A stretch of 62,646 bases of DNA, the filler included, from Choristocarpus tenellus KU-1152 (Eukaryota > Protista > Phaeophyceae): NCBI GenBank assembly GCA_964200185.2. It is 14 parts of 14 records of this genome, joined end to end, with 100 filler letters (N's around TTAATTAATTAA, not from the genome) between each part and the next. Parts side by side here need not be neighbours in the genome. Positions count along the whole stretch, not along the records: positions 41,961 to 47,107 come from CAXNAD020011719.1; positions 47,208 to 50,408 come from CAXNAD020021588.1; 12 more parts are not named here. The stretch is one strand, 5' to 3'. Every line of letters begins with the position of its first letter. The stretch's first letter is position 1. Both the position numbers and the translations under genes were made by a program. A model generated the notes under the pieces. The model was given only the letters and a program-made list of their open reading frames with translations, did not search any database and was not told where the DNA came from. Below are positions 41,961 to 47,640 of this stretch, piece by piece.

Positions 41961-42939
41961 CCAAGGGGCTGAATTATAGCACTAGCACCATAAACAGGTT
42001 GTTGGATAATATGGGGGCCATGCCGAATCGCCGCTGGATCAAACCCAAGCTTAAATCGTGGCAAAAGGTATGGAGAATGGACTTTATTTGCGATCAAGTG
42101 GACTGGAAACGTGGTGTGTACGCCTCTATGACAAACACGATCCATGTGGCTGATACCTGGTTTTACGTGATGGTTGATGGGGAAAGGGTTAGGCTATTTC
42201 TGCATGAGGATGATAGCGACCTTCCAGGGTCCCCTACTTTGCAGCACAAGAGCCATATCCCCTAAACCATGATCATTGCAGCCAACCCCCGCCCAGATTC
42301 GGCTCACAGCTTTGACGGAAGCTTGGTGTTTGGCATGTGTGTGCGCCAAAAACGGCAGACAGGACAAGCAAGAACCATAAAAAGGGGAATGTGTACGAGC
42401 AGGACTGTACTTTAGACCATTTGTGGTACAAGAAGTTGTACATGGAGGAGTTACTGCCTGCAATCAAGACCAAGATGCCTTGGATGTAGAGGAAGCACGT
42501 TGTCATTCAGGAAGACGGTGCCACCCCCCACACGGGCAAGGGCAACTCAGAAATCGTGTCAGGGGCAAGGAGGACTGAGGGGTGGTCGATTAGGCTTATA
42601 ACGCAGTCATCTAACTCCCCTGACCTCAATATCATTGGCCTGTGCTTCTTTAGGTCTATGAAATGCCGGGTGATGGAGGAGCGGTTTGGGTCCGTTGTGG
42701 AGATGGAGAAGGTCATTAAGAAACAGTATGAGGAGTATGATGAAACCACACTTGAGAAGGCTTGGCAGCTCCATTTTGTGGTGTACAATCAAGTACCTAG
42801 ACACAAAGGGGGGAATAACTTCAGTGTGGAGCACACAGGGATAAGGAAGAGGCAGTTGTCTGGTGAGCTTGAAAACACGTCAAAGGTAGACAGGGAGACT
42901 TTTTCTGTGACCATTGAAATTGTGGTGAATGGGAAGTAA
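41961..42939 (+). mobile_element. Mariner-like transposase pseudogene (plant/oomycete DD39D-related clade)
   Basis: IHVADTWFYV...QHKSHIP*TMIIAANPRP...IQEDGATPH...TQSSNSPDLNIIGLCFF...HKGGNNF; contains stops and frameshifts. Confidence 0.9.
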
Positions 42940-43318
42940 TAATAATAAAAAGAAATGAATCTAACCAGAACTTCGTCAAGGATTCAAAATCTTCTTTCAG
43001 AAAAGAATTTCATCAAAATCGTCAAAAGTTATGGACAACGCGGCACAGACTTACGGCATGGAGGTAGTAATAAATCTTTCCTTCTCACTTTACCCCACCC
43101 TGTCTCATACGCACATGATACACATATATGAGTGTGTGTCTCCATGATGATATGTGCGAATATACTACGTCTTTTCTTCCTTAAATATTTGAGTGTGTGC
43201 ATGGAGGGGAAAGTGCCATATTTGTGGATGAACCTTTCCAGTAACGTTGCCGCCCTCATGACGATGCAAGCTTTTATTGGAGTGTTGTAGCATAACTGGT
43301 ACTCAAATAGTGAATACA

Positions 43319-43470
43319 GGGTCGAAGTATCTGAGGGGGGGAGGGGGGGGTCTACACAATGGTATCCATTCGGACCCTGACCAGGAAAAATGTCATAAAA
43401 AAAACGTGGGAAGCAAAGCCCTGAACGGACAAAGAGGGCAAAACTCGTACCCTCCAAGATACTTTCACTT
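43319..43470. mobile_element. Hybrid MITE (family A end joined to a family B end)
   Basis: gggtcgaagtatctgagggg...tctacac...accaggaaaaatgtcat...gggcaaaactcgtaccctccaagatactttcact. Confidence 0.75.
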
Positions 43471-43527
43471 GTATCACATAACCTAACCTCAATTTTGAAC
43501 CCATCCCCGGGTCACCCATCAAAAACA

Positions 43528-43707
43528 GGCTCAAAGTATCTGGGGGGGGGTGGCGGCTCTCCATTTGGGGTCAATTTTTTCATGTCGCGATTTTTGGGAG
43601 ATTTGGTTCCATACATTGGATGGATAATGAAAGTGCACTTTTCCTGGTTTTGACCTAAATTGACACTCTGGTGTACACCCCCCCCCCCCCCCCAGATACT
43701 TTGGGTC
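43528..43707 (+). mobile_element. Full MITE family A copy
   Basis: aca|ggctcaaagtatctggggg...cccagatactttgggtc|aca. Confidence 0.9.
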
Positions 43708-43863
43708 ACACAATAAAAAATGAGTTGTTACATCGTGGAAGTCTCGGTAGGATCTCCATGTTACAGCACGCTCCAGAACCTTACCTCAACAGGATGTATA
43801 GCTCCAATCCACAAGCTTACAGAAAATGCTGATTCTCACGCGAGCCTATCAGGATACTTCAAC

Positions 43864-43949
43864 AGTCCAGAGGAGTCCAGAGGAGTTCAGAGGAGTCCAG
43901 AGGAGTCCAGAGGAGTCCAGAGGAGTCCAGAGGAGTCCAGAGGAGTCCA
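43864..43949. repeat. 10-bp minisatellite (AGTCCAGAGG), about 8.5 copies
   Basis: Directly visible, with one variant unit (agttcag). Confidence 0.97.
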
Positions 43950-45721
43950 TCGCACATCAGGTTAGTCGAACGTCAGCTCAACAGAACAGGGGTACTTTTC
44001 TCAGTCAATATCAGTATATGAATTTGGTATCGGAATTAAGAAAAGTGATGAGAGGGGATTGATTATCCAATGCTCTTCATTATTTCTTTCATCATCGTCA
44101 TTTACCTTTTATTTGTTTTGGCTAACTGAAGTTGGAATACATCTGAAAACTGTTGCAACATTCCCAAGATGCAGATAGTACTCTGCAACCTTTAGCAAAT
44201 CGTAGTTCCTCTTAAAAAGGTTCCCCACGCGTGTATACTGCTCGCGCTTGTTAGAATCGAGAAGAAATACTCGCGCTATTCGCCTGTAACATATTCCCCA
44301 GCATAAACTAGGAATACATATTTCTCGCTTACCACAGGCGATAATCATGGATCAGGATAATAAATATAATCCATCGTATTAGATCATGTTGCGGCGGCAT
44401 AATTGCCACTAGGTAACATAAGGGCTTCAGTTCCGACTCTGCCAGTTGTTTCCAACATAGGGACTCCAGTTCCAAATTAACTCATGGATTCCAACAACGA
44501 TCGACAAATCTCCTCATTTCCTTTGAGAAAGGATCCCCAAAAGTCTTTAGACACTGTCAAGATCAATATATATCTGACCATATCAGAGTATATACTTTTA
44601 TTTAAAATATATACAACTCCAACTAGTTCCAAAATATCTCAACAAATATCCTTGTTTTCCTTGGGAATTTTTTCCCCAGGGTCACAGAATACTATCATGA
44701 TCAGTTTGCACCCGGCCTAATCTGAGTATACACTTGCTCCTTCTGAAACACACCTTCAAAATTAAGAAAGTATATATCTCTGATATGACCTAAAATGAAT
44801 GGGTCCCCAGCTCCGATCTCTCTAATCACAAATATCATTAATTTATCAATGTTCACTTTGAAGTGTCCACAAGGTCACACATAGCAGTCTGCGTCGAATT
44901 GTGCCTGCCCTAATCCGAATACACACTTGTTTCTTCTGAACTGAATTTCAAAAGTTGTAAAGTACATAGTTCTGATTAGGGCTGCAAACCATGGGTCCTC
45001 CGTTCAATCTTCCCAGTTATAAATGCAAGTCCTATCAAGGATTAAACTTATATTATTCATGACCTACTCGACATCTGATTATTGCCTGTCCTATGCCCCC
45101 CAAGTACAAAGCATACTCAAGGCTGCTATTGTGCAAAACAGGCAATGAAAAAAATTTGAAATGAAATAAAGAAATAAGGAAATAAAGAAGAGTCAATGAG
45201 AGCAACAAATAATAATAATGAATAAATAAAAGGAAAAATAAAAACGGAGTAAAAAAAGAAAGGAAAGAAAAATGGGAGAAAAAAGGAAAACAATTACTAA
45301 AAATAAAAAGGGGTAATAATATAAAGGAAAGAAAATAATCGATGGATGATGAGCATAAAAAAAATGGAAACTGAATAAATAATAATTAAATAAATGTTTA
45401 GAACTTTTTATATACACATATGTATATAGTTTTCATTGGTTTCCCCCTGACATCTGCAAAATGTCAGAGGGCATAATAATAAAAAAAAAAGAAAAGAAAA
45501 GAAAAAAGAACAAGAATCGCGGTGAATAATGAGAGTAACAACTACGAAAAAAATGAAATAAAAATAAAGGGATGATGGGATCAGAACCTAAAATAAGTAA
45601 ACGTTAGAACAGAAGGGTGAGATAAAAGAAAATGTATATATATATAAAATAGAAAATTCAAGATCACAGAGAGCAGTTACAACATAGAAAAGAGGAAAAA
45701 AAAGTTAGACAGTGCCAAAAT

Positions 45722-45890
45722 AATACCTTAATCACACCTATTGAAAATATTGAAAAGCCCTTTGTTAAATCAAAACGATAATTGGTGACCCGAACAGATT
45801 TTATTCTGTGCTTAACGAGCATGGACTGAATATAATAGAAACAAAATCATTTCCAGAGTCTAATATACAGGAAATATCAAAATATCTAAC
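45722..45890 (+). pseudogene. lpxK: Decayed fragment of a bacterial tetraacyldisaccharide 4'-kinase (Rickettsiales-like)
   Basis: NTLITPIENIEK(frameshift)..IGDPNRFYSVLNEHGLNIIETKSFP matches the LpxK C-terminal motif (Rickettsia, from memory: NAQIVPSNNIDK...[28 protein letters not shown]). Confidence 0.6.
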
Positions 45891-45990
45891 ATGAACAAAA
45901 TTTGATAATATTTTTTCGACTGATCATCTCAAGTCTTTTGTAGCGGTCATTGTGTTTTTGCTAAGTCTGATACCAACACACTTGAAATTA

Positions 45991-46265
45991 ATGCTTGTAA
46001 AATTTATTATTAAACCATCTAATAAACTTTCTAGTATTTATATTATTATGCCCTCTGACATTTTGCAGATGTGTCAGGGGGGAACAGCTCAGCTCTTAAA
46101 ATTTTAGCTGAGAGCATGACATAAAACCTTTCTTAAGTTTCTCTCATATATTCCATGATGGAGTATGTGCCAATTCAATTTTATAGAAGGGGTTGGAGTT
46201 CTAATACTGGTAACCTATTTGCGGGATTAATCTTTAAGAACTCTTTACGTCTCAGCCAGTAATCA
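45991..46265 (-). pseudogene. Decayed alphaproteobacterial glutathione S-transferase (FzlA-like) fragment, split by a ~52-bp retroelement 3' end
   Basis: DYWLRRKEFLKINPANRLPVLE...IGTYSIMEYMRET*ERFYVM...LRAE|insertion 46036-46087|TRKFIRWFNNKFYK. Confidence 0.75.
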
Positions 46266-47640
46266 TTAATACTTTAGTGTGCGTGATTGATTTTTCCATT
46301 TTTATTCCGATGGTTAAATTTAAAGTAATATCTTGGATAAAGATTGTTGCCATACTTGCCATATATATCAGGAGTAAGTAGATGGGAACCTAAGGAAGAC
46401 AGTAGTACAATATTTGATAGTGGTGAAGTAACTGATTATTAGTGGTTTCCATACTTAAAATGTTTTACAGTGTTCTTATGTTTAGAATACTCTATTTCTT
46501 TAGGGCTAATAACGACACGTATATATATATAGTTTTTATTGGTGTCCCCCGACACATCTGCAAAATGTCAGAGGGCATAATAATAATATATGTTTTACAA
46601 AGTAATGCGAGAATAATTGTAAGATTATCTACAAGTTTTTTAGCTTCTCAAGAATATTCTTCTACGTCAAATAAAGAAGAAAAAAAAGGATAACTAATAT
46701 TTCAGTAAATTTATAGCGTTTAATTAAAGTTTGCTGTACATATATGTGGAAAGCATATATATATATAGTGTTTTTATGTTTAGGATACTTTGTTTCCTTA
46801 GGGCTAATAACGACATACGTATTTTTATTATTATGCCCTCTGCCATTTTGCAGATGTGTCAGAGGGGAAACCAATGAAAACTATATATATGTCGTTATTA
46901 GCCTTAAGGAAATAAAATATCCCAAACGTAAACATATGTATAGTTTTCATTGGTTTCCCCCCTGACACACCTGCAAAATGGCAGAGGGCATAATAAAATA
47001 ATAATACCGGTGCTCGCTCCACCTCAACTGCATGGTCAGCCTCTGCGAAGATGCCAACCATCCTTTCACATGCCCCCACTGCAGAACACACTTACCCATC
47101 CCCACACNNNNNNNNNNNNNNNNNNNNNNNNNNNNNNNNNNNNNNNNNNNNTTAATTAATTAANNNNNNNNNNNNNNNNNNNNNNNNNNNNNNNNNNNNN
47201 NNNNNNNACAGGGCAAAACTCGTACCCTCTAAGATACTTTCACTCGTTTCGTGTGTGTAATGTTTGCCTGTTTGATACTTTTGCTAGCACTAGCGCACAT
47301 ATTTCTTAGCGCTTTGCTTATTTTTTGTAGTAAGTACTAGTATTTTGTTATGCTCACTGATATTTTGCCAAGCATGATAAAAGGTTGATATAAGATAAAC
47401 ACAATATCAACAGAGTCTGTATCACCTATAACAATGGCCTTCTGATATACCAAGCATTGTTGCATTTGAAAAAATAAACCAACTCCGTCTACACCAGGTA
47501 CCTATGTAGTTATTATTATTGCATTTTTATCTAAAATATCCAACAAACACAAGATACGGTTATGACGACATAGAATCCTTCCCCATCATCCCTCTCTCCC
47601 CTCGGTTCCCTGCCTCCCTCCCTCTTGAAAGGGAAAATAT

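Follow-up and report, generated by a model that had tools for sequence, protein, structure and literature searches.

The window (the whole stretch of DNA that was analysed, 62,646 nt) contains, in a eukaryotic contig, an AT-rich patch of ~650 bases that holds dead fragments of two bacterial genes, an FzlA-like gene of the GST family and lpxK, which lie on opposite strands and 110 nt apart. At 30–36%, the GC content of the patch is below that of the left flank (44%) and of the right flank (57%). The features of the locus are as follows, with repeat copies 1, 3, 4 and X delimited by repeat search and alignment of the copies.

45420..45490, + strand: host repeat copy 1, 5'-truncated and with an A-rich tail after it
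45781..45885 (solid core 45781-45858), + strand: LpxK-like remnant (tetraacyldisaccharide 4'-kinase, about residues 233-265 of ~320), matched by TIGR00682, PF02606, phmmer, ESM Atlas and tblastn
45886..45995, no strand assigned: AT-rich spacer of 110 nt between the LpxK and FzlA fragments
45996..46035, - strand: 3' part of the FzlA-like fragment, codons 92-104, 90% nucleotide identity to 945-984 of L085 and 490-529 of L087
46036..46087, - strand: 52-nt 5'-truncated repeat copy inside the FzlA-like fragment, 94-98% match to other copies, its flanks meeting at L085 945
46088..46264, - strand: 5' part of the FzlA-like GST-family fragment, codons 33-91 of a 223-codon gene, 84.1% nucleotide identity, ungapped, to L085 770-945
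46252..46362, - strand: ORF MASMATIFIQDITLNLTIGIKMEKSITHTKVLMITG, a piece described earlier as FolB-like, directly abutting the FzlA-like fragment
46466..46590, + strand: host repeat copy 3, ~125 nt, the longest form
46764..47003, + strand: host repeat copy X, interrupted by copy 4, with its 5' part at 46764-46822 and its 3' part at 46933-47003
46823..46932, - strand: host repeat copy 4, in the long form, lying within another copy

The two parts of the FzlA-like fragment together make up ~215 nt of the 672-nt gene, that is 72 codons (codons 33–104). In blastn they match metagenomic Rickettsiaceae contigs (L085/L086) with 84.1% identity (176 nt) and 90% identity (40 nt), and the fragment, when read through, shows 76% protein identity to P0131, one of its closest intact relatives, and 83–84% nucleotide identity to P0131/L085 over codons 33–104. 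The part of the alignment that had not been used for finding the relative scores 80, against 22.4 ± 3.6 in the shuffle null. The GST/FzlA-like piece recognized in the first-pass annotation is thus borne out far beyond chance. It is homologous to the thioredoxin-like N-domain and the start of the C-domain of FzlA, and its match to GST_N_2 has an E-value of 0.008. Against the FzlA model NF050814 (NCBIfam; GST-fold FtsZ-binding protein, Alphaproteobacteria), whose curated cut-off is 300 bits, the fragment alone gives 13.8 bits (E 0.037, positions 36–58). Since the closest intact relatives, which match this model end to end, also stay below the cut-off (230 bits for P0131 and 236 bits each for P0128 and L036), we use the label 'FzlA-like GST-family'. 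The DNA homology to fzlA ends sharply, with none beyond 46264 or 45996. Moreover, an intact frame of ~223–228 codons is absent: the 72 codons carry three in-frame stops, all in the 5' part (46088..46264), and a 52-nt insertion. By codon position, the mismatches between the window and L085 number 5/11/21, compared with 4/4/18 between two intact orthologues, and at the sites that are invariant in three bacteria the window has changed at 2/50, 7/60 and 10/35. The constraint on codon positions is relaxed, with an excess of second-position changes, and the fragment is a pseudogene piece.

The insertion sits between two codons that are adjacent in the bacterial gene and shifts the frame, its junction being ambiguous by 1–2 nt. 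The interruption had been placed between ...RAE and TRKFIRWFNNKFY and assigned to the 3' end of a host LINE; the halves do abut at L085 945, and the intervening 52 nt are a copy from a repeat family of which the contig has five further pieces. This family has a constant 3' end, an A/T-rich tail, variable 5' truncation and one nested insertion; within the contig it behaves like a short tail of a non-LTR retroelement, probably of a LINE. Because no target-site duplication longer than ~4 nt surrounds the 52-nt insert, classical retrotransposition is only a candidate origin for this copy. The Rfam microRNA matches at 46768–46976 were discarded, as all are far below the gathering scores and reflect the inverted repeat copies.

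A repeat copy inserted in a bacterial gene argues for residence in the host genome over contamination. A mis-joining in the assembly, by which reads of a live Rickettsiaceae associate were attached to host sequence, might be considered because close relatives of the fzlA fragment occur as free bacterial contigs in metagenomes. However, such a chimera is very improbable for a piece that covers less than a third of its gene, breaks off sharply on both sides without flanking bacterial genes, has lost its frame and its codon-position constraint, and is cleanly interrupted by a repeat that recurs in the surrounding sequence; the flanks themselves consist of A/G-rich low-complexity DNA and nested repeats and are unlike the bacterial contigs of these relatives. 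In addition, 61% and 42% of the words of the contig are present in two runs from two samples of the organism, both runs belonging to one study. The continuity of host flank, bacterial fragments and repeat is that given by the assembly. The surroundings, with their repeats and low-complexity DNA, look nuclear. The host identity and the nuclear location of the patch are suggested by composition, repeats and a lead from ESM Atlas, without confirmation by Pfam, to Tc1-like Oomycota fragments. For contamination filters the patch is both a warning and a control, since removing 'bacterial' matches would delete true host sequence here.

The second bacterial piece is much shorter, ~26–35 residues or ~80–105 nt. 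Where LpxK has its DHH motif the piece reads ESN, and downstream of it 45892-45894 is a stop. The similarity is found with TIGR00682 (E 8.6e-4, 18.5 bits, model positions 233–259) and with the Pfam LpxK family PF02606 (E 0.006, 16.2 bits, model positions 236–261), in both cases below the curated thresholds of 91.95 and 27 bits, respectively, while the best of 27 decoy pieces gives an E-value of 0.068. A phmmer search against 1.8 billion proteins has as its top match an LpxK fragment carrying PF02606 (P0001), with an E-value of 4e-5 that is overstated since the same stretch was counted in two copies. The top three clusters in ESM Atlas are LpxK, and the best tblastn matches in 7.3 Gb are to Sinorhizobium lpxK at the homologous position, the identity to this GC-rich LpxK being 46% over 26 amino acids (residues 237–262). 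The PDB search with the piece gave no match, and upstream of 45781 no LpxK similarity to the N-terminal P-loop kinase core was found beyond a non-significant colinear trace of 1.1 bits. Two further results were set aside because their search patterns came from P0001, namely a SAR11-dominated genome scan for LpxK, rejected as donor evidence, and a local LpxK HMM score of 27.6 bits. Five concordant tests, each weak and all below curated thresholds, thus support the reading of 45781-45858 (or up to 45885) as a short LpxK remnant, and the similarity is specific to LpxK rather than to composition, so that the earlier LpxK-like call holds for this short stretch. It could be argued that AT-rich junk merely resembles AT-rich bacterial proteins by chance, given that the family matches of the short pieces lie below the curated cut-offs and that the FolB likeness considered below is no better than that of decoys. 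Such a coincidence is refuted for fzlA by its match to a bacterial gene, with 84–90% of nucleotides identical along 216 nt, and with an LpxK match to a GC-rich genome at the homologous position and nothing from the decoys below the value given above, it is hardly conceivable for the patch.

The tree places the fzlA fragment in a clade with P0131, P0243, P0128 and P0244 (99% SH-aLRT), which is nested in a clade of 97 Rickettsiaceae rows, with the genus Rickettsia outside. These relatives are named Rickettsiaceae, Rickettsiales or Rickettsia endosymbionts, and their contigs show a Rickettsiales-type synteny (polA-fzlA-...-virB4, ftsK, group II introns and tra genes). The FtsK of the near-donor contig has 72–75% identity to those of Rickettsiaceae MAGs, and an identical CarD protein was found on a Tara Oceans scaffold. 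The donor clade is an uncultured non-Rickettsia lineage of the Rickettsiaceae, which is also seen in marine metagenomes and probably had an endosymbiotic life-style. Nearest to the fragment are the lineage of the ENA contigs ERZ25068762 ctg149613 and ERZ25070786 ctg115648 and the contigs with P0131 and P0128. The Rickettsiales-like origin stated earlier therefore stands, the best relatives being bacterial and significant rather than eukaryotic, though none of them points to 'Ca. Megaira' in particular: the only ones with names are 'Rickettsiaceae bacterium', Trichorickettsia and Tisiphia. The lpxK piece may have come from the same donor. To our knowledge, Wolbachia lacks lipid A genes such as lpxK.

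An adjacency of lpxK and fzlA in the donor was looked for and is seen neither in 32 Pelagibacterales lpxK loci nor in 49 fzlA loci nor along 63 kb of the near-donor contig ERZ25068762 ctg149613. Since lpxK is absent from the vicinity of fzlA in the ~75 kb of near-donor DNA, and nothing else there matches the contig, the patch appears to join unlinked fragments, and the patching of short pieces suggested from the sequence is reasonable. The spacer between them (45886..45995) has no match in any search made with it.

The ORF at 46252-46362 had been read as the N-terminus of FolB (dihydroneopterin aldolase, PF02152). The frame exists as described, on the minus strand; the FolB identity finds no support, as Pfam, NCBIfam, PDB and tblastn give no match even with an E-value limit of 10. 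A third bacterial fragment at this place, be it FolB or another gene, would fit with the direct contact to the fzlA fragment, with the shared composition and with an alignment to E. coli FolB that runs from start to start (score 35, shuffle p 0.003). Against the same protein, however, decoy pieces reach scores of 40 and 33, and as the ORF finds no counterpart in the ~75 kb of near-donor DNA either, we regard such a fragment as unlikely. Nor was the ORF accepted as the N-terminus of the same fzlA: the spacing and the ATG would fit, but the homology stops at 46264 while the core is 84% identical.

Considering the donor clade, the decay and the inserted repeat, we assume, with a probability of about 85%, that DNA from an obligately intracellular bacterium of the Rickettsiaceae entered the host genome as short unlinked pieces, which have since decayed. 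The nearest relatives lie inside an obligately intracellular bacterial clade, and pseudogenisation and the insertion of a host mobile element are signs of residence. The pieces would have been joined into an AT-rich stretch, most likely during the repair of a chromosome break, and the fzlA and lpxK pieces, neither of them able to encode a protein, have since drifted neutrally, acquiring stops, losing the DHH motif and accumulating an excess of changes at non-synonymous positions. Later the short retroelement-like repeat of the host, which has inserted repeatedly in the AT-rich neighbourhood, put its truncated copy into the fzlA fragment. The old endosymbiont-to-host transfer proposed at first is thus supported by the sharp breaks around 72 codons, the stops, the excess second-position changes and the clean repeat insertion. 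The pieces are very short and lie in a repeat-rich, rearranging region, so one may also ask whether they were copied secondarily, by segmental or TE-mediated duplication or as a pseudogene, from another place in the host genome that carries either a rickettsial insert of greater size or age or a domesticated bacterial gene; algae are known to contain larger inserts of rickettsial origin, for example that of 9 kb in Volvox carteri (PMC4324946). Nothing in the contig points to another copy and the composition is still bacterial-like, which makes such an origin decidedly unlikely. The patch, with its dead fragments and the repeat that splits one of them, is thus a genuine scar of DNA transfer from bacterium to host, though an ordinary one.

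It is known that Wolbachia nuclear integrants in arthropods and nematodes, as well as mosaic NUMT and NUPT, consist of non-functional DNA captured at chromosome breaks, often in the form of shuffled short fragments, with later neutral decay and host transposon insertions; the Wolbachia integrants differ from the patch in the donor family. A fern mitogenome likewise has several fragmented and degenerated coding pieces that stem from intracellular alphaproteobacteria and lack synteny with the donor, some of them closest to uncultured 'Rickettsiaceae bacterium', although they are often kilobases long and lie in an organelle genome, whereas the context here looks nuclear. The nuclear insert of Volvox carteri strain EVE (Kawafune et al. 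2015, PMC4324946), which is ~9 kb long and comprises four gene-like regions in synteny, is alike in that DNA derived from Rickettsiaceae is resident in the nuclear genome of an alga or microbe, as the trace of a past or present rickettsial endosymbiont; unlike that syntenic block, the patch consists of ~215 nt and ~100 nt of unlinked genes with a host repeat inside, and host and donor may belong to other lineages. In the genome project of Trichoplax adhaerens, Rickettsiales-like sequences in a eukaryote assembly also raised the question whether one sees symbiont reads or a transfer; according to the published account (PMC3641634), they were mostly reads of a live endosymbiont, while the fragment here is dead and split by a host repeat. 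Cases of this kind are already known from Volvox carteri, Trichoplax and the fern mitogenome; the patch adds one more case and reveals no new mechanism and no functional gene.

The locus is a clean and checkable example of bacterial DNA fixed in a eukaryotic genome, in which the fragment is dead, truncated and split by a repeat and its nearest living relatives can be named, as a specific uncultured Rickettsiaceae clade at 84–90% DNA identity. As molecular fossils of intracellular infections, such scars can bring to light pairs of host and symbiont that were missed by microscopy, and they calibrate the frequency with which DNA of symbionts arrives in the nucleus in hosts other than arthropods. 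A farther-reaching reading, possible but on the whole doubtful, is that the patch is a multi-fragment break-repair scar recording an undocumented association between the present host lineage (probably stramenopile-like and marine) and a clade of uncultured marine Rickettsiaceae that has been seen only in metagenome contigs, the Tara Oceans scaffold among them, and that many more fragments are scattered genome-wide. If this were true, one could pair host and symbiont, and date the infection, by means of the host genome. Elsewhere in the window, a Tc1/mariner reading of 42000-42940 was not adopted, Pfam finding no match there; the lead to Oomycota given by ESM Atlas concerns this stretch.

The piece of the window from 41961 to 47107 was examined by an ORF listing, a composition profile and a repeat map. 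Its G+C content is 30–36% in the patch at about 45720-46465, 44% in the left flank and 57% in the last 100 bases. All the peptide strings quoted in the first-pass annotation were found, in the frames it gave, while single stop-free pieces of the patch gave only sub-threshold family matches in Pfam and NCBIfam. Of the words of the piece, 61% and 42% were found in two sequencing runs from different samples (3 runs of one study). The DNA at 45203-45245 is A-rich and of low complexity, and the later searches covered the sequence on either side of it.

The 30-aa piece at 46184-46273 (-) matched GST_N_2 (E 0.008) and positions 36-58 of 228 in the FzlA model NF050814 (E 0.037), and PDB searches with the patch pieces gave nothing firm. 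By tblastn in plasmid records, this piece found a Sphingomonas GST, which matches the FzlA model end to end with 257 bits and whose residues 62-105 align without gaps to the downstream window pieces, not used in finding it, with a score of 80 (shuffle null 22.4 ± 3.6). The FzlA-like gene of Sphingomonas parapaucimobilis, 82-89% identical to chromosomal Sphingomonas homologues, lies on a record of 56 kb with plasmid status (L034, NZ_CP155759.1, 'plasmid unnamed9'). A scan of metagenome contigs, for which the 30-aa piece and the Sphingomonas FzlA were aligned, gave L036, a 14-kb contig of 38% G+C (58% identity over 59 aa) with the gene order glnQP-yebC-glmU-polA-fzlA-like-...-virB4. A word search found 215 relatives of its FzlA-like protein, the named ones being from 'Rickettsiaceae bacterium', 'Rickettsiales bacterium' and several 'Rickettsia endosymbiont of ...'. 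One relative, P0131, is 76% identical to the window read-through (X at stops) over 74 columns, and its contigs, L085 and L086, match the window at the DNA level: 46264-46089 aligns ungapped to L085 770-945 with 84.1% identity, and 46037-45998 to L085 945-984 with 90%. The homology ends abruptly at 46264/46265 and also near 45996, and the fragment covers codons 33-104 of 223 only. Over the full length of the FzlA model, P0131 and two further relatives (P0128 and P0210) score 230-251 bits, far above any other GST family yet below the NCBI equivalog cut-off of 300 bits, and the gene is therefore labelled FzlA-like. These alignments show the GST piece proposed in the first-pass annotation to be part of an FzlA-like gene from the Rickettsiaceae. 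The interruption of its frame by a repeat is likewise confirmed, since both blocks join at one base of L085 (945) and the residues flanking the repeat are neighbours in the Sphingomonas protein, which indicates that the 52 nt at 46036-46087 were inserted into a once-continuous sequence.

Copies of the interrupting repeat, from the repeat map and alignment
45420-45490, +, repeat copy
46036-46087, -, repeat copy inside the fzlA fragment, the shortest
46466-46590, +, repeat copy
46823-46932, -, repeat copy nested in the split copy
46764-46822 and 46933-47003, +, repeat copy split by the copy at 46823-46932

The copy inside the fzlA fragment shows 94-98% identity to the others. The family has an invariant 3' end (...CTGCAAAATGTCAGAGGGCATAATAAT, then an A/T-rich tail) and a variable 5' end, and so behaves like a short retroelement tail; the nested copy shows repeated insertion into the AT-rich neighbourhood. 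Around the 52-nt insert, target-site duplication was looked for and nothing beyond about 4 nt was seen, and the repeat is absent from all bacterial contigs compared. The LINE to which the first-pass annotation assigned the insert as a 3' end lies outside the examined piece. The nested copies at 46764-47003 form a near-perfect 70-nt hairpin, which results from the minus-strand copy lying within a plus-strand one and scores weakly as several microRNA precursors in Rfam, all below the gathering score.

The 72 codons of the fzlA fragment include three in-frame stops. Its mismatches to L085 at codon positions 1/2/3 number 5/11/21, against 4/4/18 in this stretch between the intact orthologues L085 and L087. 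Where three bacterial genes agree, the window is changed at 2/50, 7/60 and 10/35 sites, respectively, so that change specific to the window comes to roughly 8% for the first two codon positions. The second-position excess is what relaxed constraint would predict, and we consider the fragment non-functional.

In a 127-row tree built by maximum likelihood (quick search with SH-aLRT support only, hits <195 aa omitted, Sphingomonas outgroup limited to four sequences), the fragment falls into a five-row clade with P0131, P0243, P0128 and P0244 (support 99), which is nested in a 97-row clade (support 99) with 'Rickettsiaceae bacterium' MAG proteins. The named Rickettsia endosymbionts fall into a different clade of 16 rows, apart from it. 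Two ENA contigs, of 70 kb and 13 kb, encode cluster members of P0128 and P0131. The former shares the synteny of L036 and carries ftsK, carD, flhA, gyrB and several group II intron reverse transcriptases, and the latter carries polA, fzlA, a group II intron and tra/par. The 70-kb contig encodes an FtsK with 72-75% identity to 'Rickettsiaceae bacterium' MAG proteins (61% for Candidatus Trichorickettsia mobilis, 60% for Candidatus Tisiphia) and a CarD to which a protein of a Tara Oceans scaffold is identical. Taken together, the FtsK relatives, the synteny and the CarD identify an uncultured, non-Rickettsia member of the Rickettsiaceae as the donor, probably a marine one. To our knowledge, all described Rickettsiaceae are obligately intracellular, and hence the donor is called an endosymbiont or parasite. 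The Rickettsiales-like origin claimed previously therefore stands for the fzlA fragment, by its 99-support Rickettsiaceae clade, whereas 'Ca. Megaira', mentioned with that claim and a possible donor, was named by no search or tree result. The 70-kb contig (ERZ25068762 ctg149613; L092/L094-L097) also has at least three copies of a gene pair (164 aa and 433 aa, the latter RVT_1) besides flhA (FHIPEP), so that group II intron or retron-like elements abound in the near-donor lineage, which has kept flagellar export genes.

The 41-aa piece at 45769-45891 (+) matched positions 233-259 of 324 in TIGR00682 (E 8.6e-4) and PF02606 (E 0.006), against a best NCBIfam E of 0.068 for decoys (20 further pieces of the same AT-rich region and 7 non-target pieces). 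Run exhaustively on 1.84 billion representatives, phmmer gave two hits, the better being P0001, a metagenomic protein with LpxK as its sole Pfam family, whose E-value is inflated because the matched stretch occurs twice in it. In this 162-aa protein (L001, ENA ERZ27257579 k141_420049), a C-terminal AGIGNP...PDHH stretch is in tandem duplicate, inflating whole-sequence E-values for any query matching it. In the ESM Atlas feature search the three top clusters were LpxK (0.89, 202/256 features), and in tblastn against 7.3 Gb of plasmid-collection DNA the best E-values fell to lpxK of GC-rich Sinorhizobium, residues 237-262 (IADPEKFFKTVRETGAVIEETRSFPD against IGDPNRFYSVLNEHGLNIIETKSFPE); lpxK is present in 3.5-3.7 Mb records filed as Sinorhizobium plasmids. 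A SAR11 excess in the genome scan is a product of the search patterns and uninformative on the donor. Each of these tests is weak and they are not mutually independent, but they agree on one family and one position, and a proven bacterial fragment of like composition adjoins, so the short yet family-specific remnant likely derives from lpxK, as the first reading had it.

The FolB identity suggested for the ORF at 46252-46362 (-) found no such backing: it had no match in Pfam, NCBIfam, PDB or tblastn, and scored 35 against E. coli FolB, where decoy pieces scored 40 and 33. Reading it as the N-terminus of fzlA was rejected because the DNA homology ends at 46264/46265. Neither the 200-nt stretch with this ORF, nor the 110-nt spacer at 45886-45995, nor the rest of the 5.1-kb piece has a match in about 75 kb of near-donor DNA. 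The neighbours of fzlA in the bacterial contigs L036, L088 and L089 are polA and virB-region genes; lpxK occurs neither in 63 kb of the near-donor contig nor at any of the 49 fzlA loci, and the 10 kb around lpxK are free of GST genes at 32 lpxK loci. As this linkage and any further near-donor match are lacking, the two fragments came from separate genome places, or in separate events, and were then joined, which fits the 'fragment patching' proposed earlier; DNA repair may have joined them.

Comparable cases are about 9 kb of Rickettsiaceae DNA with four gene-like regions in the Volvox carteri nuclear genome (PMC4324946), fragmented Rickettsiales DNA in a fern mitogenome (PMC10027690) and rickettsial sequences reported from the Trichoplax project (PMC3641634). 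The patch is a small, well-resolved further example of the same kind; we regard the observation as real and the fragments as without function.

Elsewhere in the piece, the broken ORFs at 42000-42940 have no Pfam match; the ESM Atlas likens them to hypothetical proteins and to fragments of Tc1-like DDE transposases, most of them from Oomycota (0.94-0.96), which is no more than a lead towards a stramenopile-like host. At 43313-43703, about 390 nt are bracketed by two direct copies and one inverted copy of the motif (C/A)AAAGTATCTG followed by a long G run, the other arm having a C run; this is a possible foldback or MITE-like element. A tandem array at 43864-43950 consists of about nine copies of a 10-nt unit (AGTCCAGAGG).
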